Assembly: GCF_006345805.1 (NCBI RefSeq)
Contig: NC_043009.1
Span: 13,516,001-13,580,000 of the forward strand
Direction of reading: 5' to 3'
Length of the DNA: 64,000 nucleotides
Source: Octopus sinensis
Lineage: Eukaryota
The translations under genes and the position numbers were made by a program. Below, one piece after another: positions 1,326-62,769 of the stretch; position 1 is the first letter of the stretch, and the number at the start of each line of letters is the position of its first letter. Below the pieces are notes generated by a model. That model was not told the origin of the DNA. It made no database searches and saw only the letters and a list, made by a program, of their open reading frames with translations.

Positions 1326-2093
1326 AAGTATGACAGAGAATATCAGTGTGTGGGTGCAAGTTTGAATATTAATGTTCCTCTGTAGATGTGTCTATATCTG
1401 TGTGTGCGCGCATGCGTATGCCCGTTCAATGAGAACAAGTAGGTGTGCATTAAGTGTGCATATCTATGGAAATATGGATGTGTACGTGTGTCTGTGACTT
1501 TTATATGACTATGTGAAAGAAAGTGTGTGTGTGTGTGTGAAGAAGAGAGCGAGAGAGAGCGAGAGAGAGAGAGAGAGACAAAGGTGGTGCGTTATACAGG
1601 ACTGTTGCTCTCTCTCTGCGTCTGTGTGTCATTTTATGAATGTGTGCCTGGGCGAGTAAATGAGCAAAATGGGATGGGTAAAATGACTGACAAACTCTTC
1701 ATGATTCTAATCACGTGACTCGTTTCATTATAAAGCGGGCTGTGTTAGCTTGGCCAAGACAACAACTGCGGAATCTGCCAAGCACAACATCCCAAATAGT
1801 TATTTTTTTCCTGATCTTCTTTTCTTCTAGTTGTAACTCATTTTCTTTTTTTTTTTTTTACATATATATATATATAATTATTATTGTTTCTGCAGGACAG
1901 ACGCTTTACATTTAAGCAGATATCGGCAGGTAAATCAGGCTCTTCATTTCTTTCTACTTTCACTTTTGTCTCTCTCACACTGTTTTGCATACAATTTGTT
2001 TATGTTTGGATTATATGCATTAGTATTCGCTTGTGTCAATATATATACATACATATATATAATAATATATATATATATATATATAACATATAT

Positions 2094-12980: not shown

Positions 12981-13186
12981 TTTCTTTACTGCCCACAAAG
13001 GGCTAAACACAGAGGGGACAAACAAGGACAGACAAAGGGACCCCCAGTGCGTAACTGGTACTTTATTTATCGACCCCGAAAGGATGAAAGGCAAAGTCGA
13101 CCTCGGCGGAATTTGACATCAGAACGTAACGGCGGACGAAATACGGCTGCGCATTTCGCCCGGCGTGCTAACGTTTCTGCCAGCTC
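12981..13186 (-). mobile_element. SINE group B (head ggcggcgagctggcagaa, body ggggtcgat..aagtaccag)
   Basis: Near-identical to 38518-38748 and 48028-48262, with an internal deletion. Confidence 0.8.
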
Positions 13187-13340
13187 ACATACATACGTAT
13201 ATATATGTATATGTGTATGTATGTACATATGTATGTGTGTGCATGTGTACGTATGTATATATGCATGTATACATATATATATATATACAAATATGTATGT
13301 ATACACACACACGCGCGCATACATACGTATATGTATATAT

Positions 13341-13406
<66 letters not shown>

Positions 13407-13449
13407 CATAAGTGTATATATATAAGTATATATATATATATATATATAA

Positions 13450-13504
<55 letters not shown>

Positions 13505-13531
13505 TGTATATATATAGGTATATATATATAA

Positions 13532-13578
<47 letters not shown>

Positions 13579-13596
13579 CATATAAACAGACGCACA

Positions 13597-14985
13597 TAAC
13601 TCTTTAGCTAGTCTCAGCTCGAGAGGTGCAGCTATGCTGGGGTCCCACCGTTAGCTCTGCTTCACGTTCACTACTTGAAGCCTCTTCTTGTACGTGGCAT
13701 TTAGTCAACGATGGAGTCTGATGCCGTTGCCTCATCTGTATTTCCTACCACGTTATAGGCTCTTCCGGAATCCTTGACAGGGGGAGATCCAATTTTATTT
13801 TGAAGACATCTACAACCACACCATGCAGTCGTGGGCCTTTGAAATCTGTGGGTCTTTGAAATCCAAGCTGTTACAGTATTTGGGCCTGTATCTCGGAGGC
13901 GATGTCGGCATCTTTGGCATTATGCAGTGGCGCCTTTTTCTGCTGTTTATGTAGCTTTCAATGCCAATGTTTGGTACAAGTACTATTAGTACTTTCCTCT
14001 GTGTATTTTGCTCGCCTACGGTCTAAGGAGTAGAACCTTGACTTTTTCAAACCGTCTCAGAAGCTGACGCATTGAATTTAGACAATCATTTTTGTGTAGC
14101 TTCGCTGGATTGCCTCAAATTTCGCCATTGTTTTTGCACAGTGTAGTGACCATATTTAGGAGCAGTAGTCTAAACGGCTGATAAAATATATCTTCTAGAG
14201 GAGCATTATGGCTTCCTGTTCTCTCCATCTCAAAGTCTGAAGAGTCCATTAGGCCAGCCAACTTTGTAATAGGCATCGTAACTCATGTCCCTTCTCAGGT
14301 CATGCCCTTATTTCGTTCCGGGATTTCAGTCCCTTCCGGGCCAATATGTACTGTCTGTAAATCATTGACCTTTGTTGACTGACAGCGCAGGGCTTGGAAT
14401 TTCTTTCAGCATTCAAATGCATGTTATTGTCCTCAGCCCACCTGAATATTACGTCCAAATCCTGTTGCAGTTGCGTAATTTTTCCAGGGTTCTGTATCCT
14501 CTGACAGGCTCCTTATATCATCAACATAGCAAGTATGGCTATCTGAGCAGCTCAGGGCATGTCTGAGAGAGACATCTCTCTCTATATAAACGGCAGTTTG
14601 TCTGTGCGTGTTTCTGTGTGTCTGTTTGCTTGTACCCTCACCCTGACCACGGCTTTCAACCGATTCTGATGAAACTTGACACACACATAGCCTAATGTCA
14701 TAATTCAAAACTAACGCAGCGAAAATTTTGAAAAGTTCCCCCAGTTCTGAAAAAAATCGATAAATTCGACATGGGGTCGAGAATCAGAAACAAAAACCAT
14801 AAACTGTCTAGGGGACGCAACTCCACCTTTTTTGAATCTCAAAAAAAAATTTACCATCATTTTTTTCCATTTTTTTGCTATAACTCTCTAAAAATGCTTT
14901 ATAGTTATTTCCCTTACAAACCTGAGCAACGCCGGGCGATATTGCTAGTTACGAATAAATACGGTACCCTGAGGAGATGAATGTA
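13597..14985 (-). mobile_element. Decayed CR1/L2-group LINE: RT C-terminus and 3' end, interrupted by a Helitron-like insertion
   Basis: The - strand gives PQGTV..LFVMSLSDMP, a frameshifted YVDD motif and QQDLDVIFRWAEDNNMHLNAEKFQALRCQ, with many stops and frameshifts. Confidence 0.75.
14575..14948 (+). mobile_element. Non-autonomous Helitron-like element
   Basis: Starts TC after A, ends with the GC-rich hairpin cctgagcaacgccggg then CTAG followed by T (A|T insertion site). Removing it rejoins the LINE RT sequence. Confidence 0.7.
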
Positions 14986-26110: not shown

Positions 26111-27059
26111 ATTTCGTCCTTTTGCTGACGAAAGAAGTACTATTACGGTACTGGTTTGATGTGTTCCGCCATACTGCCTATAACGATTGTTCCTTCCTCC
26201 TAAGTTGGCAGTCAGTGCAAGCGAAAGACTAGCGGATGATGAAGTCTGAAAAGTTTCGGACAAGCTATTTTGCAGTTTAATGAAGTTAAATTATAGTTAA
26301 GCCAATTTCCAGTTTTGTCTTTCAACACTACGCCTTCCATCAAACAACAAGCATTCCACACGTAACAGAAAACAGTATGGTCTTTGTGTCTACGTAGGAA
26401 GCCATTGTTATTTGAGGCGTGATGGAGTGACAAGAACAATAGGTGCCAGATTAAGAAATTTTTTATTTATTGAACACAGAGACAGGGAAACAAACGGAAA
26501 GGAATATAAAACGAAAATAATTGTTATGGGTCCAAGAGAACTTCAGATTGTGACGGTTTTATAATAAACAAACCATATTTGATTAAATTGTAAGGGAATT
26601 AATCAAATATCAAAACTTAAAAATTAGATTTGAATATACTGAAAGGAAATAAAATGCATTTATTGCATTTCCTCTTGTATGGTTGTTCTGTTGCTGCGTC
26701 TTTAAACCAATCTTCCTCAGCTCCACCAATACACAATTCCTCAGCCTCTTTTTTTGTACTCTCTCCTTCTCACTCTCTCCTGCACACAGTCCCTCGCACT
26801 TACACATTATTTCCCACATTTCATGTTTTACCTATAACCATATACATAATTATTTTTCTCTTTTCTGACTACACGCGTAACTTGCACGCATATACACGCT
26901 CACAGAGAGATGATGCGCGCGCACACACACACACACACACACACATATAAATATGTAAATATACTCGGAAAATAGCATAAACAAAGACACGGTAACATAC
27001 ACACACCCCACAAATTCTTCTCCACTCTCAGGCTTATTCTTGTGAGTGTATGTGTGTTG

Positions 27060-27350
27060 ACACTGTGTATGTATGTATGTATGCATGTATGTATTATGTA
27101 TGTATGTATGTATGTATGTATGTATGTATGTATGTATGTTTGTATGTATGTGTGTATGTGTGTATGTATGTATGCATGTATGTATGTATGTATGTATGTA
27201 TGCATGCATGTATGTATGTATGTATGTATGTATGTATATATATATATGTATGCATGCATGTATGTATGTATGTATGTATGTATGCATGCATGCATGTATG
27301 TATGTATGTATGTATGTATGTATGTATGTATGTATGTATGTATATAGGTA
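27060..27350. repeat. (TATG)n microsatellite
   Basis: Direct inspection. Comparable (TA)n, (TG)n, (GATA)n, (ATT)n and (GAT)n arrays occur at about 1-300, 2030-2520, 3350-3500, 3745-3960, 9178-9300, 9790-10050, 13190-13585, 31290-31730, 35200-35375, 41680-42000, 43265-43362, 44595-44950, 49265-49760 and 62455-62635. Confidence 0.95.
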
Positions 27351-28589
27351 GGTACAAACACAGAATACACACAAACACACGCAAAAAAAAATAATAAATA
27401 CCCAATATTGAAAAAGGAGCTGGTTCCCCTTCACTGACATAAAATCTTTGAAAATTAGCTAAAGCAAATTAGCAAATAATTCAATTGTTTACCAGACATC
27501 TGAAACAATGTAATGAAGTATACAGAAATGATCAACTTGTGTGATCTGTGTATTAATGCGTTTGCGCATGCTCGTTTGTGTGTTGCGTTCAAGTGTGCGA
27601 ATGCAAGTATTTGCGTTAGCATATTCGTGAGCAAATGGTCTGTGTGCGCGCTCATGTGTTGTACATTATGTGTTGCGTTAGAAGATCTGTATGTAGATGT
27701 GTGTGTTTATATTTCTGTGCGTAATACCCACGTGTGCATCGATGCGTGTAGCTGTCCTGTTATTATATTCATTTATGTGTGTGCTACGAGCGTAAGTGTA
27801 TACACCAAGCTTTATTTGCAACTAAGTGTGTGTATGTTGTGTGTCTGTGTGTAAGTCTGAATGCGCTTGTTGTAAGAGTATGTCTATTTATATCTTTAGA
27901 TGTATGTGCATGTGCATTTATTAATGTCTATGTTCGTCTTTGTGGCGTGCCTATGTATGTGCCTGACTGGCTCATTATGAATTTGTGTCTTTGTATGTTT
28001 ATTCGTATGCCTCTTCCTGTTAGTATGTGGTTATGTTTCTGAATGTGTCTATTTATCGTATATTTATCTTTGTTCACTCTACTGAGAGATTCAACATTAA
28101 ATAAATAACATACAAAAATAAATATATAAACCATAAATATATAAATAACCCGAAATTGTGATGAAAGGGAAATATATCTCTTTGTCTTTATACAATTTAT
28201 AAACAATACTGAAGCTGTGATCAACCTTGGTTGTAGTGGTGTCGGTGTTGATGATAGTTGGGGTTCTAATCACGGGGATGATGAATAGGATTGCTGTGGT
28301 GCTGGAGTTCGAATTTTGGTTGTAAGAATGGTAGGATAATTTGTTTGTTGTTCTTGTGTTTAAGCATCAGGAATGCCTTAACTTATCAATAAATAACATT
28401 CGCAAATTTTTCTGGGATATTGCGAAGGATGGGAAATATTATTCCCATCCTTTCCAAAGCAGTAGATGGTAGTGTAATATGAGAGAAATTTAGCAGCTAT
28501 TTCAACTGAAGTCAGCGACTACGTAGAGGCTCGATGTTTGGCTGAGTGAGCTGTTTCATAATGACGTCAGTGATGATGATGGTTTCTGA

Positions 28590-43364: not shown

Positions 43365-44614
43365 ATTCTTAGAAGAATTTTCTTTCTGGAAAAAAAAATC
43401 TGCGAGTCATAGTTTGAGAGTATATAATTCTAAGGAAAGGAACCGTAAAAAAAAATTTGGCAACAAATATGTACATTCAGGAAGTACATTTTGAAGTCAT
43501 ATTCTTCCGGAGTTAGGTTACTCGAAAATTGATGAAGCTTGTCACTGTTTTACTAGAATACTCGTCGTTTTATCCCCAGATCTGCTATTGGCATCCTTTT
43601 TATCATGGAGATACGCCTATGACGAAATACGTCAATCCCTCGGCAGTCGATCGACCAAAATTTATACAGATATGTATTACTGTATGTTGTTGAATGAGAC
43701 AATATTTTGTTTGAAAAATAGAAAATTATTCCTGTGGAGACAGTGTCTTTGGTTGAATAATTCCAATATATCTTTGTATTACTGGTATTTATTTCATCGA
43801 CCAAAGCACGTTGAACAACATAATCCGGTGCCATAAGAGGCTGAGAGTTAAATTAGATAAACGACTTAATTGGCCATTCTACTGTCTGCAAACACACCTC
43901 CATAACTACATAATATTAATCTGAAATATACCTGTGAGGATGCTAACAATAAACCCGGAATATTTCCCCGAAGAAAACAACAAAACTCCCAAAATTAGAT
44001 TTGATTCAAATGCTATCTTGAGATTTCTTTAATGGGCATTTCGCATACAACGTATCTAATATCTAGTAATTCATGTATAAATTCAATATGCTACGGATTT
44101 GATAAAAGGATAATCGATATATTAAAACAATACTCAATGATGAATTGCAATGTATATTACAATGCCGCTTAAAATTTCAATTAAATGTAGTATTAATATT
44201 CACTGATAATAATATTGGAATCAATTTTACATTTCAATACATATTTTGGCACACATATATATACATATGCAACGGGTGTGTGCGTCTGTGTGCGTGTGTG
44301 ATAGTGGAACACATCACCTTGAAATAGTCTTGGGTACCATAGCAGAAAGTCTTCAATCAGCAGTTAAGAATTAGAAGATTTTCTGGTTGAGAATGCTCTT
44401 TATGTGGTGGTGCAACAAGAGTAAACAAGGGAAAAGGATGAAACAGCAGAGAAAACCCCTACAAAATGAACATATAAAATGGCGACACAAATCATGTGAA
44501 ATCGAAATTGCCGAATACTTCGTCATTCACCCTCTTTAACGATACAGCATTATATAAGCATGAATATATGCATATGTATGTGTGTGCGCTTATCTGTCTA
44601 TCTATCTATCTATC

Positions 44615-44675
<61 letters not shown>

Positions 44676-44706
44676 GTCTGTCTATATCTATCTATTTATC
44701 TATCTA

Positions 44707-44769
<63 letters not shown>

Positions 44770-44885
44770 GTAAATGTAATATGTGACAATTATTCGGTAG
44801 CCAAGGTCTCTTTTTTTCTTTTGTTATCTTACCGTTTTTATCAATATATATGTATATGTATATGTATATGTATGTATATATATAT

Positions 44886-44927
<42 letters not shown>

Positions 44928-46928
44928 ATATAATATATATATATATATATTCACAAGTTTTTCTCTAAAATACTTGATACAATCTCAGTCATGGAAGGAA
45001 CATCTCCTTAGAAGTTATTAACTATTTAAAATCATCTTAGAAAAGACTTGAACAGCGAAAGCTTTTGCAAACACAATGCAAAAGAATTCGTTCCAAGTGT
45101 TTATTTTGTTTTATTAAGTAATTTTTAAAATAGTTAATAACAATTAAAAACATCTTGTGTGCATGTGTGTGTGTATGTGTGTGTGTGTGAGGATTGTTTC
45201 ATCTCGTAAGAAAATAACCGTCACGAATAATAGAGGGACATCTGTACGGTATAGTATTGCAGTGATAAAATAATACAACTCTTTTTCCATTTTCTCGTTC
45301 TCCATGCTAGGTGACAAACATTGCAAGATGTCCTCGAATTATTTTTCTTGCAAAAGTTATGTCAGATTGTCTTTCTCTTAGAAGAAGCCTCTTCCGAAAT
45401 GCCTTTTCAAACGTAACCGTGGCCTCCTTCAGCCGTGACAAATCTATTTAACCTACAGGTGGAAATCTGACAGAAACTACCGTTCCACGTCAGAAGAAAA
45501 CTGATAGAGTGACTCCAAGGTTCCACATCTCCGAACAAGATTATCACAACCGAATCCGGTTTAATGTCATGCCCAGGACATACACGCTTACATAACTACC
45601 TATCTGTATGTGTGTGTACATAAATGCTTTGGTATATGATTTTTTAAAATTCTTTGACGCTTTAGCCATTACCTAATAAGTCATGTTAGAGAAAGTTCAT
45701 GAGAGTGTTATTACTTTATTTATTTTTTTTGTATGTTTCTGAAATATGTGTTACTAATTTACTAACAGTTTGTTTTCTCTTCTGTTGGGCACCGGTCTAT
45801 GGGGGTATATAATTTGCTGTGTGTGAGAGTACATACTTATAAGTTCAAGGAACATCACATCTGAAGACTAAGTGAAAACATTAATGGAAATGCAGAGCAA
45901 ATACGAATAGTAAAGCATGGGATTAATATTCCAATTAATCTTTACTCGCATGCTCGCTCTATTTTTGATAAAGATCAATTTATTCCTAACTAAATACAGA
46001 CCCTGGAAAACAATCAGAAGATTCACTTCAAAACGAATATTGATTTTATCATTATGTTTATTTTGTGTTAGTGTGTGAATATGCAGATGTTTAAAGGGAG
46101 TATATGCTTGTGTGTATTTTTGCGATTAAGAAAATTATATGACTGAATTTGGTATATGAAAAACTGCTTTCAAAATTTGTTGATAGAAAGTACTACCGAC
46201 TTGATGAGAGTAATATGAATTTGGTAGCACTATAGTATTCCTTGAATATAATGCGAGGTTTTATGTACAACACAGTCTGCATTTCTTTGCATTTATGTGT
46301 GTATGTGCACATGTGAGTAACTCAGCCACTGATCTATATTCATTCAGACTTTTGAATTTTTGTTCGTGGTTCGTGTAAAAAAGAAGTCTTCTGAAATGAT
46401 TTTTTTTTTAGTAAATGTAGAGAAACTTTAAACTATTCAGTAAAACCTGGATATTAGATAACATGCTGTTCAGATTTCATTTTATGGAAAACAGCCATAG
46501 CTGGCGGAGGAAAATAGTTTCAGAAAAAACTCTCCACAAACAGAAAGTGTGTAGCAAAAACAAAAGGAGGAATTACTATTATCTGGTCTTGACCGTTTAC
46601 AAAATATTTCCAGCAATGCGTGAAATTAAGATTAAAACAATAAAATTACTTTATGAATCTGACATAGTTACTCTTTGCTCTCGTAACAAGCTGACAATCA
46701 CATAAAACATTTGCAGAAACATTCCAGAAGTTAAATCTTAAACTTTCGGTATCTGATTGTTATAAGATACTTTTCTTTATGACATAGGAAAGTATTCAGC
46801 TTCAATATTTTATTCGACTGATATAATAATTTTTTTTCTTTAATAAAGACGTCTACATAAAGATGTGTAAAGCACATGCACATATATGTGTGTATGTGTT
46901 TCTGTATGTGAGTATTTCTTTATATTAT

Positions 46929-50889: not shown

Positions 50890-50933
50890 TTCTTTTTTTT
50901 CTCTTATTTTTTACAGATTAAAAGGAACCCATA
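50890..50933 (+). other. Splice acceptor and 17-nt 5'UTR part of FMRFa coding exon 1 (implies an upstream non-coding exon)
   Basis: Long T/C tract ttctttttttctcttattttttacag ending at 50916, then 17 nt to the ATG. Confidence 0.7.
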
Positions 50934-51075
50934 ATGAGTGGCTTGAGTCCCTTCAGCTTGTTAATTTTTATTTTCATCTACTGTCTCACGGTGTATGCTG
51001 CTACAGCTATGAGCCTGGCTCAGGCATGTATGGAGTCACCCAGTATGTGCGAAAGTATCTCGCTTTCTCATTTAG
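50934..51075 (+). CDS. FMRFa: FMRFamide precursor, coding exon 1 (signal peptide and N-terminal pro-region MSGLSPFSLLIFIFIYCLTVYAATAMSLAQACMESPSMCESISLSHL-G)
   Basis: ATG at 50934, hydrophobic core LLIFIFIYCLTV and an AxA-type cleavage region. Preceded by a polypyrimidine tract and AG acceptor (ttttttacag, AG 50915-50916) and followed by a consensus donor G|gtgagt at 51076. The 142 coding nt leave phase 1, matching the acceptor at 55339. From memory, LAQAC.ES resembles the N-terminus of squid/cuttlefish FMRFamide precursors. Confidence 0.9.
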
Positions 51076-54035
51076 GTGAGTATCGTTTTCTGACCTTCCC
51101 TATGTTTTGTCTTTCCACAATCACAGAATTGATCAGTGAATTTACGTGTATACACACACACACACACAGAGGCCACCAACACCAGCGTTCGTGAACTAGA
51201 GTGTGGTAGAAGTATGTGATTCACATACACGCACACAAGCACACATATACACACATGTATACACACACGCACAAACACACACACACATATATAAATATGA
51301 ATATGCACGTATGTATGTATATATGTATATATATATGTCTGTGTGTATCACTACTAACATCTAAAATGTACCTTCATTACTAAAGTGCATATACAATTCT
51401 CGTAAGCCGTTACACGTATATCTACATATATACACGGAGACATGTATACATTCTCGCTCAATCAGTAGAACACTTTTACTCATATACACATAGAGAGGCG
51501 CAGAAGCTGTTATATGATTTTCTTCATAACTTCTTTTCGGCTTCTCACCCATTGCGAAGAAGTTTTTGAAATTTGGACAATGAACATGTCGGCTAATATC
51601 TTGCGAGTGAAATTGCTATGGTAGGCCTAAACTATATAGAACCCAGTCGTGTGAGTGTGCGTGTGTGTATGAGAGTGTGCGATCGTTTGTGTATCTGTGT
51701 TCGTTGTGTGTTTGCGTGTGTTTGTATGTGTGCGCGTCCCCGACCATTTATTTTCATCACTCAGCAGATTGTGCTGTAGAATGTTGGCATCCAGGCTCTG
51801 GGAACGAAACCAAATCTGGTTGCGATTTGGAAAACCGCAATTTAGCGATGGATTGTATGGACAAACGCTTTAGACTAATATAATAAATTAATCATCTTTT
51901 TACCAATGTCTCATCTAAGATGCACAGTTTGCAATTTAATTTAACTACGGAGCGATCTGCCAAGAAATCACTTTGGCTAGTGCTTCTCCGATAACACTAC
52001 GAAACACAAGCGCTATTCTGTTGGCGATTACTTTTGTTGTCCTTGTTCTAGAAGTCAATGTTGAGCTCTCTGCATATTTCTAATTCTTTTTTTAATAATT
52101 AAATCGAATGTTATCTGCATGCTTACCGCTAGTTCACACGTGCCCCTGTTATATTTTACCCAGATGTTAGTTTGGATATAGAAGAAGAACATGATCTTGA
52201 TGTTGATGAAATGAGAAACGTGTTTCTTAGAAGTCACCATAGGCGGTGACCCTCTGTAATTTAAGTACAAAAAAATTCGTTTGTGCTTTCTTTATCTAGA
52301 TTCGTTTCCTCTTCTTTAACCATCGAAGATATAAGGTTTGGTCATGATGTTTTGGATTCTCATTGAATGTGTTCTTGCTAGAACACCATCAATCATTGTC
52401 ATTGAAGAACGACTGAATATTGAGAACAGCTCTGTATGAGAATAGATGATCTCAAGAATCAAACATTTTCCAAAATTAACATGCTATTGAAGAAAATAAC
52501 AGACATATGATTTGTAAAGAAGAAGAGAATCGCGGACATATGTTTTTGCCTAAATTGGTGTCATCCGCTCAGAGAAATCCCCTAACTTGTCTCCTACATA
52601 GACGTATACAGGAAGCGTAGAACATATGTTTGGCCTAGATAAGTTACCCAAAGATCACGGTATTCGTTTTGCAACGACGATGTATATATTTCATGGCATC
52701 TTGGGCAAATGTCATAAAGTATAGACAGAAATTGTGAAAATTGTGACAACCTTCTCTGGCGAGTTGTTAGTAGAATTCTGATTGATACACGCTGATTCGT
52801 CTTTAAAAATGATGTTATGGACATATATGCGTTATCATAACGAACACTTATATATGTATATAATTATATATATATGTATATGTACGTATGTATGTATGCA
52901 TACGTTTACTCATATGCAGCCTTCCACTTTTTATATCCCCAAAGGTTTATCAATGTTATTCTCTTATTTATAGATTTATATATGCGTAGTTCATGCGAGA
53001 TATTCCCCAAAATTATGAATATATATACATACATACATATACATATATATATATATACATATGTATTAGTATATATATAGATATATAGATATATATTTAT
53101 ATATATGGAAAAAACGTCAAGATAGAAAATGCTAAAATAATTTTATAAAAATCATTTCAGTACTGGTTTCAGTCATTGAGACATTTTTAACTTTAAGTAT
53201 GGAAAACAATTAAATTTAGAAAAATTTTAAATGCTTTTTTAAAAGAATATTTGTACAAGTGGCATTTTCCTTGTTTCTGCCTGTCTCTGTCTCTTGTAAC
53301 TCTTGTAACATACCTGTCATACATATGACAAACAGAAATATTTTATTGCCATCAACACGTAACATAACATAGTGTATTTGATCACTGGAATGATGACCAA
53401 TTAAATGTTGTGGAAAAATCGAAATTGTGTTCATTGAATAATTTTGAAATTATTTATGCAGTTTAATGTATGTTTTGTATTTAAACGACAACTGATTGCA
53501 ATCTTAATTTGTGATTTGCTTCCAATATGATTTAATACATACTAGTTGTTTCTTTTTTATTTCCTTATTTATATCTTGAAGATTTTGAAGAATTTTGGTT
53601 CTGTATTTCAATATTTATTGTTTTCCAATTCTCGTAGATCACTGTCGTGATAAATTTCGTTAAGATGCGAATTCAAAATAAGACATGACTGCCGTAGCCC
53701 ATGTACAAACTATAATATTTAGTCCGTACTTCGAAATATCGGTGGTGAATTTATTAGAAATACACAATGAATTATAATTGCGATAGTAGACTTACAACTA
53801 TAGCTATGTACAGTATGGTGAAACGAAGCAAAATGTGAAAGGATACGGAGAATAGTGGAACGTTTTATGAACGCAAGCAGCTGCAGCTCTGTTCTGTCGT
53901 GTGGAAAACACTGGCTAAGCTGTCAATTTGGTATGTATTCAGAGTGAATCATAATAAAATGATAAATCGAAATATTAACTAAATCGGAGGATAGACAATA
54001 TAGGGTCGTTCATAGGAACTTTCGTCCGTGAGTAG

Positions 54036-54066
<31 letters not shown>

Positions 54067-54106
54067 CTATATATATAATATAAATACATATACATATATA
54101 TATATA

Positions 54107-54160
<54 letters not shown>

Positions 54161-54362
54161 GAAAGATATATAGTTAGATGGCTGGAAGATACATATACAG
54201 ATAGTATGAATTAAATGATAAATCGAAATATTAACTAAATCGATAAATAGGCAATAACGTTGCTGATAGGTACTTTCGTCCGTGATTACTAATGAGTATA
54301 TATATATATGTATGTATGTATGTATATATATACATACATATATATGTATGTAAATATATATA

Positions 54363-54407
<45 letters not shown>

Positions 54408-54616
54408 ATGTGTGTGTGTGTGTGTGTATGTGTGTGTGTATATAATGAAAGATAGATAGTTAGATAGATGGAAAGATACATATAGAGATAGTTAGTATGA
54501 AAGAATTTCATGAGTTAAATGATAAATTGAAATATTAACTAAATCGATAAATAGGCAATAACGTTGCTGATAGGTACTTTCGTCCGTGAGTAGTAATATA
54601 GATATCTATATGTGTT

Positions 54617-54672
<56 letters not shown>

Positions 54673-55338
54673 GAAAGATAGATAGCTAGATGGATGGAAG
54701 GATACATTTACAGATAGTATGAGAATTTCATTTAATCTCTAAGGTGCATCTACTCAAGCAAAGCGGGTACACTGTAATTTCAGTTATATAAATAATGATT
54801 CAGACTTAATCACATCAAAACCTGTAATCTGAAATAGACTTAATTTATTAGCTAATAATGTAGTATAATATTAACCTAAGCCTCTCATTTCCGAAGGATA
54901 TCTGTTAGGCGAAAGTGGTTTTGTAATATGTATTAATACGTAATATCTCAGTGTTGCGTGGATAAAGGTCATAGTTGATCATAGAATTGTGAAACGAATT
55001 AGTTATAGCCCCGTAAATTATGATTCCATACTTCTTGAACGTTGTAGAACTAGTATTAATAACCTCAGTATAAGTAGATAGGTCTTATATAGTTATGAAT
55101 GTCGTAGTTGTAGTAGTATTCATAGAAGACAAAATATGAATGATACATTGTGAGATAGGGTAAGTTTATGCGATAACAGTATAGTAAAAAAAACATACTA
55201 ATATTGCTAGTTAGAACAATGCCAATAGTAATGTCAGTTCTAATAATGCCAATAGTAATGCCAGTATTAATAATGATGATGTTAATTGTGATTTGTGAGA
55301 CAAATATTTAAGACTTCTTTTTCGTTATATCTTTGCAG
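51076..55338 (+). other. Phase-1 GT-AG intron of FMRFa (4263 nt)
   Basis: Donor gtgagt at 51076 and acceptor tttgcag ending at 55338; splicing restores one continuous ORF. Confidence 0.9.
53958..54731. repeat. Three tandem copies of a ~260-300-bp unit with embedded (TA)n/(TG)n, in the FMRFa intron
   Basis: Unit taaatgataaat(c/t)gaaatattaactaaatcg...actttcgtccgtga...(TA)n...aatgaaagata starts at about 53958, 54214 and 54518. Confidence 0.9.
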
Positions 55339-56147
55339 GTTCTGAAGACGGATTAAAGAGCAAACGCTTTCTTCGTCCAGGAAGAGCTCTTTCTGGAGAT
55401 GCTTTCTTGAGATTTGGTAAAAATGGTCTAAATTTACCATTTGAAGACAAACGATTCCTTCGATTTGGTAGAACTGATCGACAATTTGAAGATATGCTAA
55501 AGGAAGTTTTACAGAGAGCTGAAACCGTTGACAATAGACAAAAGAGATCCACTGACAACATTCCTCAAAGCTCAGTTCAAGATGACAGTTCGAAAATTAC
55601 GAAGAGAAATGCTGATGCCAGTGAAAACGGAATGGACAAGAGATTTATGAAATTTGGTAAATCCGGTGATCCTTACGTCAATGAATGGAGTGACAAGCGT
55701 TTCATGAGATTCGGTCGGGAACCTGACAAGCGATTCATGCGATTTGGAAAATCTGATGATAAACGATTCATGCGCTTTGGTAGAAACCCAAGTGAACTTG
55801 AAGATAGAATCGAGGAAGGAAAACGCTTTATGAGATTTGGACGGGGCAATGATGAAGAAGAAAAACGGTTTATGAGGTTTGGACGTGATCCTGACAGTAA
55901 GTTAATGGGTTATGGTAATAGTGACGAAGAAAAACGCTTTATGCGCTTTGGTAGAATGTCAGATGAAGCTGATGCTCAAAAAAGGTTCATGAGATTTGGC
56001 CGAAGTGTTGATGATGACAAGGCGAACAGGTTGAAAAAATCAAACGATCAGCTTCGTACGATAAGAACGGGACGTAGCGTTGATGATAAAAAGGTGAACA
56101 GCGCTAATGGAGATGCGTATCTAAGAATCGGACAAAGTGATGAATAA
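55339..56147 (+). CDS. FMRFa: FMRFamide precursor, coding exon 2 (peptide cassette: FLRP, ALSGDAFLRF, FLRF, FMKF, 7x FMRF and divergent C-terminal units)
   Basis: Acceptor ttctttttcgttatatctttgcag|GT. G(51075)+GT forms Gly, in frame with the 55407..56147 ORF. Repeated KR-FMRF-G(R/K) units, the cephalopod decapeptide ALSGDAFLRF-GK, furin site RQKR (55536-55547) and stop TAA at 56145-56147. The joined CDS is 951 nt, 316 aa. Confidence 0.97.
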
Positions 56148-56470
56148 GATGTTGGTACGTTGAGCAGGCTGACGGGATCCGTCCCATGTTTGGAAATAAG
56201 AAAGACAACTTTTTTCAAATCAAATAACTGCAGTAACAACAACAAGAAGCAACATCAACAAGAATATGAGTAGGAAAAAATAGAATATCAAATCAACAAC
56301 AACAACAACAACAATAACAATCAGATTTTGTGATCATATCTTGAACGTTGTGTTTACATCTATCATAAAACATCTGTTGGAGAGTAACGAACTGCTTGTT
56401 TAGGAGGAAACATTTTGATTTCTATATGACCAGTTCTAATTGAAAAGAAAGAAGGACATTAAAAATTCAT
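56148..56470 (+). other. Proximal 3'UTR of FMRFa with (CAA)n tracts; possible ATTAAA poly(A) signal at 56458-56463
   Basis: Follows the stop codon. No AATAAA nearby, so the 3' end cannot be fixed from sequence. Confidence 0.4.
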
Positions 56471-58587
56471 CAACAACTCAACTCTCTTATGGTGGTAGTT
56501 GGTATATCTCTCTATATTGTACAATTTATATAAAACTGGATCGATAGTTCCTCGTCGTATCCAGAAATTCAGGACTTATACCAGCCTTCAATGTAGAGCT
56601 TTTTCAGCATGCTTCATCACTATGTGTATATATGTATATGTGTATATGTGTTTATGTATACATTTGTCGAAAACCCCACTCTATATATACAACTGTATAT
56701 TTACGTTCGTGGTTATGTATGTGCATGTATGTTATATATATATATATATATATTTATATATGTACATGCTATCATATATGTGCACTAGTTTGCATACATA
56801 ACCCTCTCACATATGCATCAATATGCATCACAGACAAACATATAAATATATATACATAGAAAAGAACCACCAAATAGAGTGAGTTTGATGAAATGGTTTT
56901 ATGAAAATTAAATGTAAATTTTGTGGAGAATTAAAATTTTATTATATATCCTTCACGAGATTTCAGATTTACTTAACCAACTTAATGTACGTATTCTAAT
57001 TAAACAATAATTATTTGCTGCCAAATGTATTTCTTACTTCAAATGTAGTTGAATGCTTTGTTGTTGTTATATACTGACAAAATTGCTGGTGGTAAATCTT
57101 CATATTTAAACTCTTTTTGATTCTTTAATTCCTACGTATAAAATATCCGATAGAGTCTGGTGAAACATGACTGTAATCAGAGATCAGGTCTCCGAAAGAA
57201 TTGTTATATCTTGGGTCAACCATTGGCTTATTTATTTATTAGATAAATGAACTGATATTTATATCAAGTATTTTTACATATTTTCCATGTCATGAACTGT
57301 GGCGTAGCAAAAGAGAGTAACAAGAGTACCAGGCTTCTAACAATAGTACACTATTATATCGGTTGATTTATTTACGACTGTAGACCTTGCGACTAATCTT
57401 TCAAAATGTTGTAGCCGATTATAACAATTATACAATTTAATTGATGTTCATTTTATTGACACAGAAAATATGAACAACAAAGTCAAATGTGGCAGAACTT
57501 GAACTCAGAGCGTGAAGGGTTAAAACTAAATACCCTGTGATAGTTTGTTGGAAATTCTGACAACTTACAGCCATTATATACATGAATGATTATTTCTTTC
57601 TATGATATGATCGGCCTAATATATCGGTGATAGTTATTGTGAATTATCATGGACAAAAGTAAGAAACTGGAATTTGAATTCCTGAAGGACAAACAATTTT
57701 ACTATCGGCAGTGAACTACGATCAGAACATATAGGACCAGCAGAGGGTTAAGTAAGCAACCTGTGCACACTATAGCTAAATAGAAGAAGATGATTGTCTT
57801 ACTAGAAGTACAAGAGTTTCTATACACACAGATGCGAGTGTAAGCATATATATATATCCGTCGATTGTCGCAGGTGTTACGCTTCTCCCCTACGATAGGT
57901 GACAATCTGCGAAGTAGAAACAGTACTGCACTCTATATGTTATCGTAAAATCTTTTATAATTTGTATATATTTATTTTATCATAGATGCAAATCTGTTCC
58001 ATGGTGGAGTCGACGTATGTTTAAGTAATAAACCACAATAGGAGAACCATGATATGGCGAGCGATTACAGTATTGACAGATTGATAGGGAGAGAGGGAGG
58101 GGGAGAGAGGGAGATATTTATAATGGTTTTGTTTTTATGCTTGCAACAAGTGCAACATATTTTTCTATTAATATGTTTATACTGTTTCAAACAGTTTATA
58201 ATATCATAGTTTCAAACAGTTTATAACATTAATATGTTTATACTGTTAAAATAAAATGTAACGGAATGACCTAGAAGTTTTTATAAGAAAACAAACGTTC
58301 TATTTTTTGAATCTCATAATTTGGAACAAATTATTTTTCTAATGGACACAGGTTCGTGTGTCATATAGCTAGTTAGAGGTGAAGGTCTCTTGGAGCTAAT
58401 CAACGGCATCTTTAGTCCTATATTTATGGATTGCCATATTAGCTTGGCGATAACTGTTCATTTCCGGTACCGCTGCCGTAGTCTCCTTTAGAGAGACTTA
58501 GAAATAACAATATTTCTATTTGTCTAACAATTTTCAGTTAATATATGTCAGCAAAATATACCAATTTTAATGAAAAAAAATATATAT

Positions 58588-60399: not shown

Positions 60400-62200
60400 T
60401 GGCATACGCACAGACATGTCAGTGTAAAGCTTCCTGATTGTAGTATTTTGTCATAAATAATATCACTCTGTATTTCAACTTACTGTTCCATCTCTAGTTT
60501 ATCCTTCATGAAAGGTTTGTTCAGATAACACACCTGACATTTGTCATGAAGTTTCTTTTCTCCTCTAATTTCTGTCTTAAATTTGAGGGTAGTTTCACTA
60601 GATGTATAAGGTATTCAAACAATTTCTCCATCCAGTTCACCAATATCTTCAGCATATCTTTCGATTGTGTATTTTCTTTCTGCGTTGCTGAATGTATCCA
60701 CTTCGTCATAAAGATGATTGCTCAAAATCCACTCCAGGAAAATGTTGAAGGAAAACTAGGAAAAATGGTATTTCTAAAATACTGCTGCTGCACTGAATCA
60801 CCAATGATGCATTGTGCTAGTATTACTTTCGTTTTTATTAGGTGTAAACTTATTATATAGCATGAGTTAACTTCTGGGATAGGAAAAATTTCACCATTGT
60901 GAGGCACCGCGCTTCATCTATTAAACGCCATCATGAATGGCGTAATGGTATTTTCATATAGAGTGCAGAGATGCAAAATATACTCAGCAGTGATTCTAAT
61001 GTTATATAAGCTACAATGCACTCTGTCTAAGATCTGTTATTTCTGAGTGACGCTGAGCTTTACTGAGACATGTCAGATCTCACAGAATAGTTATAAGGAT
61101 GTCTACTGTGGCTTTTATTCATCGCTCAGGGTTTTAAAAAATTCTTGTATCTGAGCATATGGAGGTTTCCCGAATGTTCAGCACATTTAAATCACCAACT
61201 TTCTATTAGTGCCATAGTTTTGAGTGCACTGTGTCCAGTTTTTCTTTATTACAGTAAGAATTTTTTCTTTATTTTTAATCATGTTTTTGTTACGATGTGT
61301 TGTCTTTAGGGAAGCCTGTTACCAGTTCAAACGCTTCTTGTGTTCTACTGGAATGGCTATTTTCAGTTTTCATTATATTGTAAAGCAAATCATTTTTGCT
61401 GTACTTCCATATTTTCTTTCGATATCTAATTGTCGTTTTTCTTTCTCTTGTTACATTTTTATTGCCTCTGTTGACTCATCTATCCTACATCTTGTTTATA
61501 GCTCTTGGCATAAACCTACAACGTCTTTTCACCAGATCTTCACTCACCTTCTCAGTCCACATAGTGTTTTAAATCGTTTGCAACGAACACTTCGTTAACT
61601 TGGAGGGGATTTAATGGTGCAAGTGTCTTCCAAAGTGTTACATGAAATTCTTTAGGATATATTGTAAATACATACCGACAAAATTTCCTTATGCCTGCCT
61701 GAAATTCATCAAGACAAGGTTAAGATCACTACCTGTATCTGTTCGTTTCAATATTTTTGTCATTTGTATTTACACACGTTTGTTTGCATCATAGTACAAA
61801 AGTATAGTCTACCTTGTGGTGTGATCGATTAGGAGTATGCTAAGTCTACCTTTTGGATGCCTTATTCATGTCTATGGTAGTATCATGTTACAATTGACAG
61901 ACTAGATGGAAGCGTCCCGCTTTTATTTCACTGAAAGCGCTACACACATTTTGTGCATCATTCTCTCACACTCAACTTAACCGGTAAAAGCTGAATGCCG
62001 CTATAACCTGCCTTCTCATTTAGCTCTTGTTAAAACGGTTTTGGGACTCATAACTATAAGATCATAAGCTCTCAAAATTATTGGTATCGATTCTGTTTCA
62101 ATATGTCTCAAAGAATGGAATGTAAACAACCAGATTGTTTGCAGATGTGATATGTAAAGCAATTATCACCTTCCTCGTATAATATTCAATAAGGTTATTC
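60400..62200 (-). mobile_element. Decayed RTE-clade LINE (AP endonuclease end through RT)
   Basis: The - strand gives HHKVDYTFV and TDTGSDLNLVLMNF (NQIDY / GSDH endonuclease motifs) and FNIFLEWILSNHLYDEVDTFSNAERKYTIERYAEDIGELDGE (FNIFLERIM...RFADD). Confidence 0.65.
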
Positions 62201-62459
62201 AAGAGAATTTAAATGAAATTTTTAATCTATCAAACATTGCCAAGCGGAAGAGAAACATAGCACTTACATTCACGCGGCAAACGCGATTTGAACACACACA
62301 CAATAATAATAATAACACAAATAATCGATTTGAACACACACACTGAATACATATATAATGTATATGAATGTACTGTATATGAGCATACATATACATGCAA
62401 ACATACATTCGCACATTCACAAACTGATACACAGAAGCACATATATTGATGCATATGTG

Positions 62460-62536
<77 letters not shown>

Positions 62537-62554
62537 ATATATAGATAGATAGAT

Positions 62555-62635
<81 letters not shown>

Positions 62636-62769
62636 CAGTAAACCCCAAAGATGAAGTTGAACAAACATAAAGAAACAACGCGACGACGTCAGCAGACGCT
62701 CGGGGAAGGAAAGCTGGTTTAATCGCAGGGAAAAACATCGTCAGCGATTCACACCTATGTTTGCGCTTA

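Follow-up and report, generated by a model that had tools for sequence, protein, structure and literature searches.

The FMKF unit of the octopod FMRFamide precursor is very probably an old, genomically fixed substitution of Lys for Arg, maintained in the first FMRF copy after the furin site. We found the unit in a 64,000-nucleotide stretch of Octopus sinensis DNA, referred to here as the window, where it reads AAG AGA TTT ATG AAA TTT GGT AAA and encodes KR-FMKF-GK:

55638-55661, plus strand, KR-FMKF-GK unit; Lys codon AAA at 55650-55652, middle A at 55651

A first-pass annotation of this DNA had placed F-M-K-F-G at 55644-55658 and its Lys codon AAA at 55650-55652, both of which are exact, and had assigned the gene to an FMRFamide precursor, which is borne out by the identity of the protein to XP_029644126.1. 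It had also pointed out that an A-to-G change at 55651 turns the codon into AGA. The arithmetic is right, and AGA is the Arg codon of three of the seven FMRF copies in the exon. The FMKFamide unit itself is an already known variant of the octopus FMRFamide gene. A partial cDNA of Octopus vulgaris predicts FMKFamide (Di Cristo, Delli Bovi and Di Cosmo, 2003, Peptides 24:1525; as related in PMC4208409), and the 2014 review that relates it terms the peptide ‘uncommon’ (PMC4208409).

Over 11,214 nt, the window matches the O. sinensis chromosome CM016871.1 (GCA_006345805.1) at 100%. Chromosome coordinates equal window positions plus 13,516,000, and window position 55651 is CM016871.1:13,571,651. 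The O. vulgaris sequence OX597826.1 is 97.7% identical to the window. The translation of exon 3, which carries the FMKF unit, is identical to residues 48-316 of the FMRFamide-related neuropeptide precursor XP_029644126.1, named ‘FMRFamide-related neuropeptides-like’ in O. sinensis; the same protein is found in O. vulgaris as QHX41569.1 and CAI9731613.1. The Pfam family PF01581 (FARP) matches the window precursor with 55.3 bits (E = 1.2e-15; cut-off 15.5) and is present in all but a few of 120 homologues among the matches listed. The precursor is 96-97% identical to that of O. bimaculoides and 72-73% identical to that of Argonauta. Its identity to the Sepia and Idiosepius precursors is 54-57% in local comparisons and 58-60% in our protein alignment (alignment A1).

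Spliced transcripts of a closely related octopus, mapped onto the window, provided the following gene model:

about 1817-1929, plus strand, exon 1, non-coding 5' UTR; 5' end approximate, GT donor at 1930 (...cggcag/gtaaat)
1930-50913, plus strand, intron 1, about 49 kb
50914-51075, plus strand, exon 2; end of the 5' UTR, ATG at 50934, 47 codons plus 1 nt, donor GTGAGT at 51076
51076-55338, plus strand, intron 2, 4.3 kb, phase 1; acceptor AG at 55337-55338
55339 to at least 56627, plus strand, exon 3, the peptide exon; coding 55339-56147 with phase 1 entry, stop TAA at 56145-56147, then 3' UTR

Exon 1 is supported by the mapped 5' ends of two RNA assemblies, L005 (SRR32601320; 55 nt at 100%) and L001 (SRR16213284; 113 nt at 85%). 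Exon 2 is supported by transcript mapping and by a tblastn match of XP_029644126.1 residues 1-48 at 100%. It encodes a hydrophobic N-terminus (MSGLSPFSLLIFIFIYCLTVYA), judged from its sequence to be a putative signal peptide. The gene covers almost the entire window, with the non-coding exon 1 about 49 kb 5' of the ATG exon. Among the ORFs of at least 150 amino acids in the window we found no second gene-like ORF, and the others are translations of low-complexity repeats. The window is rich in microsatellites of the (TA)n, (TATG)n and (CA)n types, which produce long spurious ORFs (YIYIYI..., HTHTHT...). Such stretches border the peptide exon on either side (54290-54690 and 56600-56860), and others lie, for example, at 742-1359, 13067-13597, 26850-27440, 44560-45021 and 62199-62738.

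The other units and landmarks of the peptide exon are:

55362-55385, plus strand, KR-FLRP-GR, predicted to give FLRP-amide; Pro where decapodiforms have FIRF, conserved in Argonauta
55386-55421, plus strand, ALSGDAFLRF-GK decapeptide; invariant among the cephalopod precursors in alignment A1
55449-55472, plus strand, KR-FLRF-GR, from the exon translation
55536-55547, plus strand, RQKR tetrabasic furin-type site between the N-terminal FLRF/decapeptide domain and the FMRF domain; R-x-K-R invariant in alignment A1
55695-56003, plus strand, seven KR-FMRF-G[RK] copies with acidic spacers; cores at 55701, 55734, 55767, 55827, 55869, 55938 and 55986
55896-55919, plus strand, SK-LMGY-GN, a decayed FMRF copy that lacks the dibasic site, both Phe and the Arg; aligns with decapodiform KKFMRFGK / KRFMRFGK
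56049-56075, plus strand, QLRTIRTGR in the C-terminal tail, a second decayed FMRF-GR copy; aligns with decapodiform K-RFMRFGR in alignment A1

Tandem F-x-R-F-Gly cores with basic cleavage sites and a Gly amide donor characterize FaRP precursors and are present here. So is the layout of such precursors, in which a hydrophobic N-terminus is followed by a single tetrabasic furin site that splits the FLRF/decapeptide domain from the FMRF domain. The same architecture has been described for this precursor type, and the table in that review lists seven FMRFa, one FLRFa and one decapeptide for Ov-FMRF (PMC4208409), in agreement with the peptide complement of the window. The earlier statement that every unit other than FMKF has Arg stands for the seven FMRF copies, FLRF and ALSGDAFLRF, but the exon also contains the FLRP, LMGY and QLRTIRT units. 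The FLRP-amide of octopods (Octopus species and Argonauta) would not be an RFamide at all; FLRPa is listed among the peptides tested by Dandamudi et al. (2022).

O. sinensis, O. vulgaris, O. bimaculoides and Argonauta hians all have the same FMKF core codons in their genomes, TTT ATG AAA TTT (12 nt, TTTATGAAATTT), and these 12 nt are found unchanged in the intron-less RNA assemblies L001 and L005. The recurrence of this sequence in both RNA assemblies and in all four genomes, which were assembled independently, shows that the Lys is not a sequencing error. All three members of the 90% identity cluster of the octopus precursor have the Lys, and a protein search with a 108-residue piece around the FMKF unit, aimed at partial octopod transcripts or a variant with Arg, returned no octopod fragment. 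In alignment A1, FMKF-GK occupies the place of the first FMRF-GK copy that follows the KITKR spacer, and is its positional orthologue. The aligned copy is FMRF in Sepia, in Idiosepius, in another decapodiform transcript and in a distant mollusc-like outgroup transcript; the Arg codon at this position is CGC in the decapodiform sequence L008 and AGG in the outgroup. Since FMRF occupies the position in decapodiforms and the outgroup and Lys is found in both Octopus and Argonauta, the Lys is derived and predates the split of these two genera, an age that rests on a single deep comparison, Octopus versus Argonauta.

In the FMKF unit, the dibasic site ahead of the core (KR; KK in Argonauta), the two Phe, the Met, the Gly that serves as amide donor and the Lys behind it are all still in place. 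Its GK-S context is that of the FMRF copy at 55734, which gives no reason to expect that the two are processed differently. The spacer that follows, PYVNEWSDKR, is long and conserved in all octopods compared. Five synonymous sites in the 18-nt FMKF unit are unchanged, which is not significant alone (about 0.65^5 = 0.12, at a synonymous difference rate of 0.348 per codon). That the unit is maintained is suggested mainly by the contrast with SKLMGYGN and QLRTIRTGR, in which the basic sites and aromatic residues are gone and neither of which is present in Argonauta in alignment A1.

The FMKF unit could also be viewed as a copy on its way to decay. The Lys would then be a neutral or slightly deleterious change within a redundant array of tandem copies, without a role of its own. 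The octopod precursor has clearly lost FMRF copies when compared with those of decapodiforms (7 versus 11), and it contains the decayed SKLMGYGN and QLRTIRTGR as well as an FLRP unit. However, the dead copies lack the flanking basic and the aromatic residues and have no counterpart in Argonauta. The FMKF unit still has KR or KK, F, M, F, G and K on both sides of the split between Octopus and Argonauta, and FMKFa is active at the native channel. We consider decay improbable.

Two further observations come from relatives. The predicted O. bimaculoides protein XP_014775931.1 (isoform X2) reads ...FMKFGKSGD and then continues with a tail of three KKVNxLKxSNDxLPxIxMxRSVxD repeats; it retains FMKF and contains none of the seven FMRF copies. 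Within 3 kb of the O. bimaculoides gene and across the window, nothing matches this tail well (best 40-41% identity, to the ordinary tail), and for this reason we rejected isoform X2 as a real alternative product of the locus. Isoform X2 may reflect an error in the older assembly or in its annotation. In Argonauta hians, two loci on BAAFZT010000020.1 (at about 45.06 and 35.73 Mb) encode an identical 281-residue precursor. They lie about 9 Mb apart in opposite orientation and are 97.2% identical over 7.6 kb, and represent either a recent duplication or an assembly duplication.

The first-pass annotation had proposed that K-to-R editing of A55651 tunes the FMRFa:FMKFa ratio, and had named simple fixed divergence as equally possible. 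The annotation rightly states that coleoids often recode K to R. Recoding sites nevertheless make up a small share of coding adenosines, and most of them are weakly edited. Editing at this site would be restorative. ADAR would change A55651 in some transcripts, possibly depending on tissue or temperature, and the FMRFa:FMKFa ratio would lie between 7:1 and 8:0. AAA would become AIA and be read as AGA, and the gene is neural. ADAR disfavours a 5' G neighbour, and the 5' neighbour here is A; the A-A-A context (55650-55652) is permissive but has little discriminating power. Arg is ancestral at the aligned position, which fits the sense in which PMC8382921 speaks of restorative sites. Recoding is also very common in coleoids and favours Arg at the expense of Lys, with 57,108 recoding sites in 6,991 of 12,039 ORFs in the published squid counts.

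The available transcripts argue against this proposal. The Lys codon is AAA in both spliced RNA assemblies, L001 and L005 (at the consensus level, from runs of unspecified tissue), and FMKF, with its Lys, is also the prediction from the published O. vulgaris cDNA (via PMC4208409). A is therefore the majority base in the mRNA, and RNA editing is not needed to explain the identity of the FMKF peptide. An assembled consensus masks a minority G, so that majority editing is ruled out in those samples and G in less than roughly half of the molecules would be invisible. Across its coding sequence, L005 agrees with the O. bimaculoides genome at every position. For L001, the identity to the O. bimaculoides gene is 98.8%, and the encoded proteins differ at two residues. 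We rejected the differences between L001 and the O. bimaculoides genome as candidates for editing: the 13 differences comprise all substitution types and are mostly at third positions. The source of L001 is probably a sister species or a divergent population, not O. bimaculoides itself.

The predicted RNA structure is also unfavorable. Partition-function folding was carried out with flanks of 60 to 400 nt and on the whole exon with the 3' UTR. The prediction is a 7-bp hairpin (GAUUUAU/GUAAAUC) with A55651 in its 8-nt loop (GAAAUUUG); the pairing probability of A55651 is about 0.002, the 7th lowest among the 282 adenosines of the exon. The predicted pairing probability at the site is 0.005 in O. 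bimaculoides, in which the loop is retained, and 0.32 in Argonauta. By structure prediction, A55651 thus does not have the dsRNA embedding of an ADAR site. The best duplex partner of the 41-nt segment around it in the pre-mRNA (50900-56700) has an energy of -25.1 kcal/mol; for 60 control adenosines the mean is -27.2 kcal/mol (sd 3.0), and 77% of the controls form a stronger duplex than the A55651 segment. A search for inverted repeats around the exon, dominated by (TA)n microsatellites, found no arm over A55651. Structure prediction and consensus assemblies are both weak tests of editing.

Synonymous sites near the Lys show no significant freeze either. We counted codons that encode identical amino acids and differ synonymously within 20 codons of the Lys and compared them with the whole exon. 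Between O. bimaculoides and O. sinensis the proportion is 3/35 near the Lys versus 0.053 for the whole exon, and between Argonauta hians and O. sinensis it is 6/30 versus 54/155 (0.348), a drop that is not significant with so few sites. The codon directly upstream of the unit's core varies between AGA, AGG and AAG. No entry for ‘FMRF’ appears in the examined supplements of Shoshan 2021 and Alon 2015, and our literature search found no paper that ties RNA editing to the FMRFamide precursor in cephalopods.

The stake of editing would also be small: only one of the eight copies is concerned, and FMKFa as such is a full agonist at FaNaC. Even full editing would change the yield only from 7:1 to 8:0, and FMKFa and FMRFa act similarly on the one receptor tested. 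Were editing shown at this codon, it would be one of the few instances in which RNA editing alters the sequence of a released neuropeptide. The odds appear low because of the unfavorable predicted structure and the A in all available transcripts. We consider restorative editing very improbable, and would be quite surprised by any detectable editing at A55651. It is hardly plausible that the site is edited at a functionally relevant level regulated by tissue, temperature or state, with neurons choosing between FMKFamide and an eighth FMRFamide from a single gene. Such recoding would alter which neuropeptide is secreted and leave protein function aside. The tuning of the FMRFa:FMKFa ratio by editing is thus disfavored by AAA in the transcripts, an A predicted to be unpaired, the lack of an outstanding duplex partner and flanks with no significant freeze, while the evidence favors the simple fixed divergence named as an alternative.

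The fixed substitution is most likely one G-to-A transition, AGR to AAA, in one of eight tandem copies. It would have occurred before the divergence of Octopus and Argonauta and been kept since, together with the cleavage sites and the amide donor. After removal of the signal peptide, the precursor would be cut by furin at RQKR. Prohormone convertases would then cut at KR and after G-K/R, and carboxypeptidase trimming and amidation from the Gly would yield FMKF-NH2. Such processing is established for the molluscan FMRF precursor family, and we infer that FMKF-NH2 is processed and released in vivo. Each precursor would yield one FMKFa, seven FMRFa, one FLRFa, one ALSGDAFLRFa and probably one FLRPa. 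In the searchable literature, we found no mass-spectrometric detection of FMKF-NH2 in any octopod.

Published assays provided insights into the activity of the peptide. FMKFa activates the FMRFamide-gated sodium channel of octopus; at the O. bimaculoides channel, its currents are reported to be larger than those of FMRFa (Dandamudi et al., 2022). At Aplysia FaNaC, FMKFa is described as about equipotent with FMRFa and FMQFa as inactive (PMC11993918, 2025), which shows that this receptor needs a basic residue at position 3 but not Arg specifically. FMKFa is also listed as a native agonist of clade 1 FaNaCs, alongside FMRFa and FLRFa. These results contradict the premise of the first-pass annotation that Arg itself is important for FaNaC activation, and the receptor assay it had suggested is, for FaNaC, already in print.

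FMKFamide may further be a functionally distinct ligand, for example one with a weaker or different action at FMRFamide GPCRs and a stronger efficacy at FaNaC. Octopods would thereby gain an additional signal from one precursor. This is compatible with a fixed substitution and adds to it a claim of specialisation. The Lys and all processing sites were kept in Octopus and Argonauta while other copies decayed, and the unit is the first after the furin site, followed by the long conserved spacer PYVNEWSDKR. On the other hand, FMKFa and FMRFa are equipotent at Aplysia FaNaC, our literature search found no GPCR data on FMKFa and no peptidomic report, and a near-neutral, conservative exchange of Lys and Arg would likewise persist for a long time. 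We regard such a specialisation as fairly unlikely.

As a maintained substitution, the FMKF unit is an ordinary finding: the neuropeptide variant has been on record since 2003, and it was assayed on its channel in 2022. Because the Lys is common to Argonauta and three Octopus genomes and the processing sites are intact, FMKFamide appears to be an old, maintained octopod peptide, not a quirk of one species. Another feature common to the octopod precursors is FLRP where FIRF would stand, and the two decayed FMRF copies provide an internal contrast.

The precursors of O. vulgaris, O. sinensis and O. bimaculoides (including XP_014775928.1) are products of the same gene, and XP_029644126.1 is identical over the coding sequence of the window. 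Compared with the published Octopus precursor, the window encodes the same peptides, including the ‘uncommon FMKFamide’, with no difference at the protein level. It adds the genomic structure: a 5' UTR exon that lies about 49 kb upstream, and a 4.3-kb intron, in phase 1, ahead of the peptide exon. The FMKF codon resembles known coleoid ADAR K-to-R sites in being a Lys codon in which a change of the middle A gives Arg, in a neural transcript and in a clade with frequent recoding. The resemblance does not go beyond this codon arithmetic. Unlike those sites, A55651 has no consensus RNA-DNA difference, no predicted dsRNA and no significantly conserved synonymous flank. For the architecture of the precursor, we compared it with those of decapodiforms (Sepia officinalis FMRF_SEPOF, Idiosepius/Xipholeptos notoides C3VVV7 and loliginid squids). 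Decapodiforms and octopods have in common the signal peptide, a domain with a tetrapeptide, ALSGDAFLRF and FLRF, the RxKR site, the KITKR spacer and the tandem KR-FMRF-G[RK] copies. Decapodiforms differ in having 11 FMRF copies, FIRF instead of FLRP, and FMRF at the position of the octopod FMKF, where they also have a second, directly adjoining FMRF copy that octopods lack.
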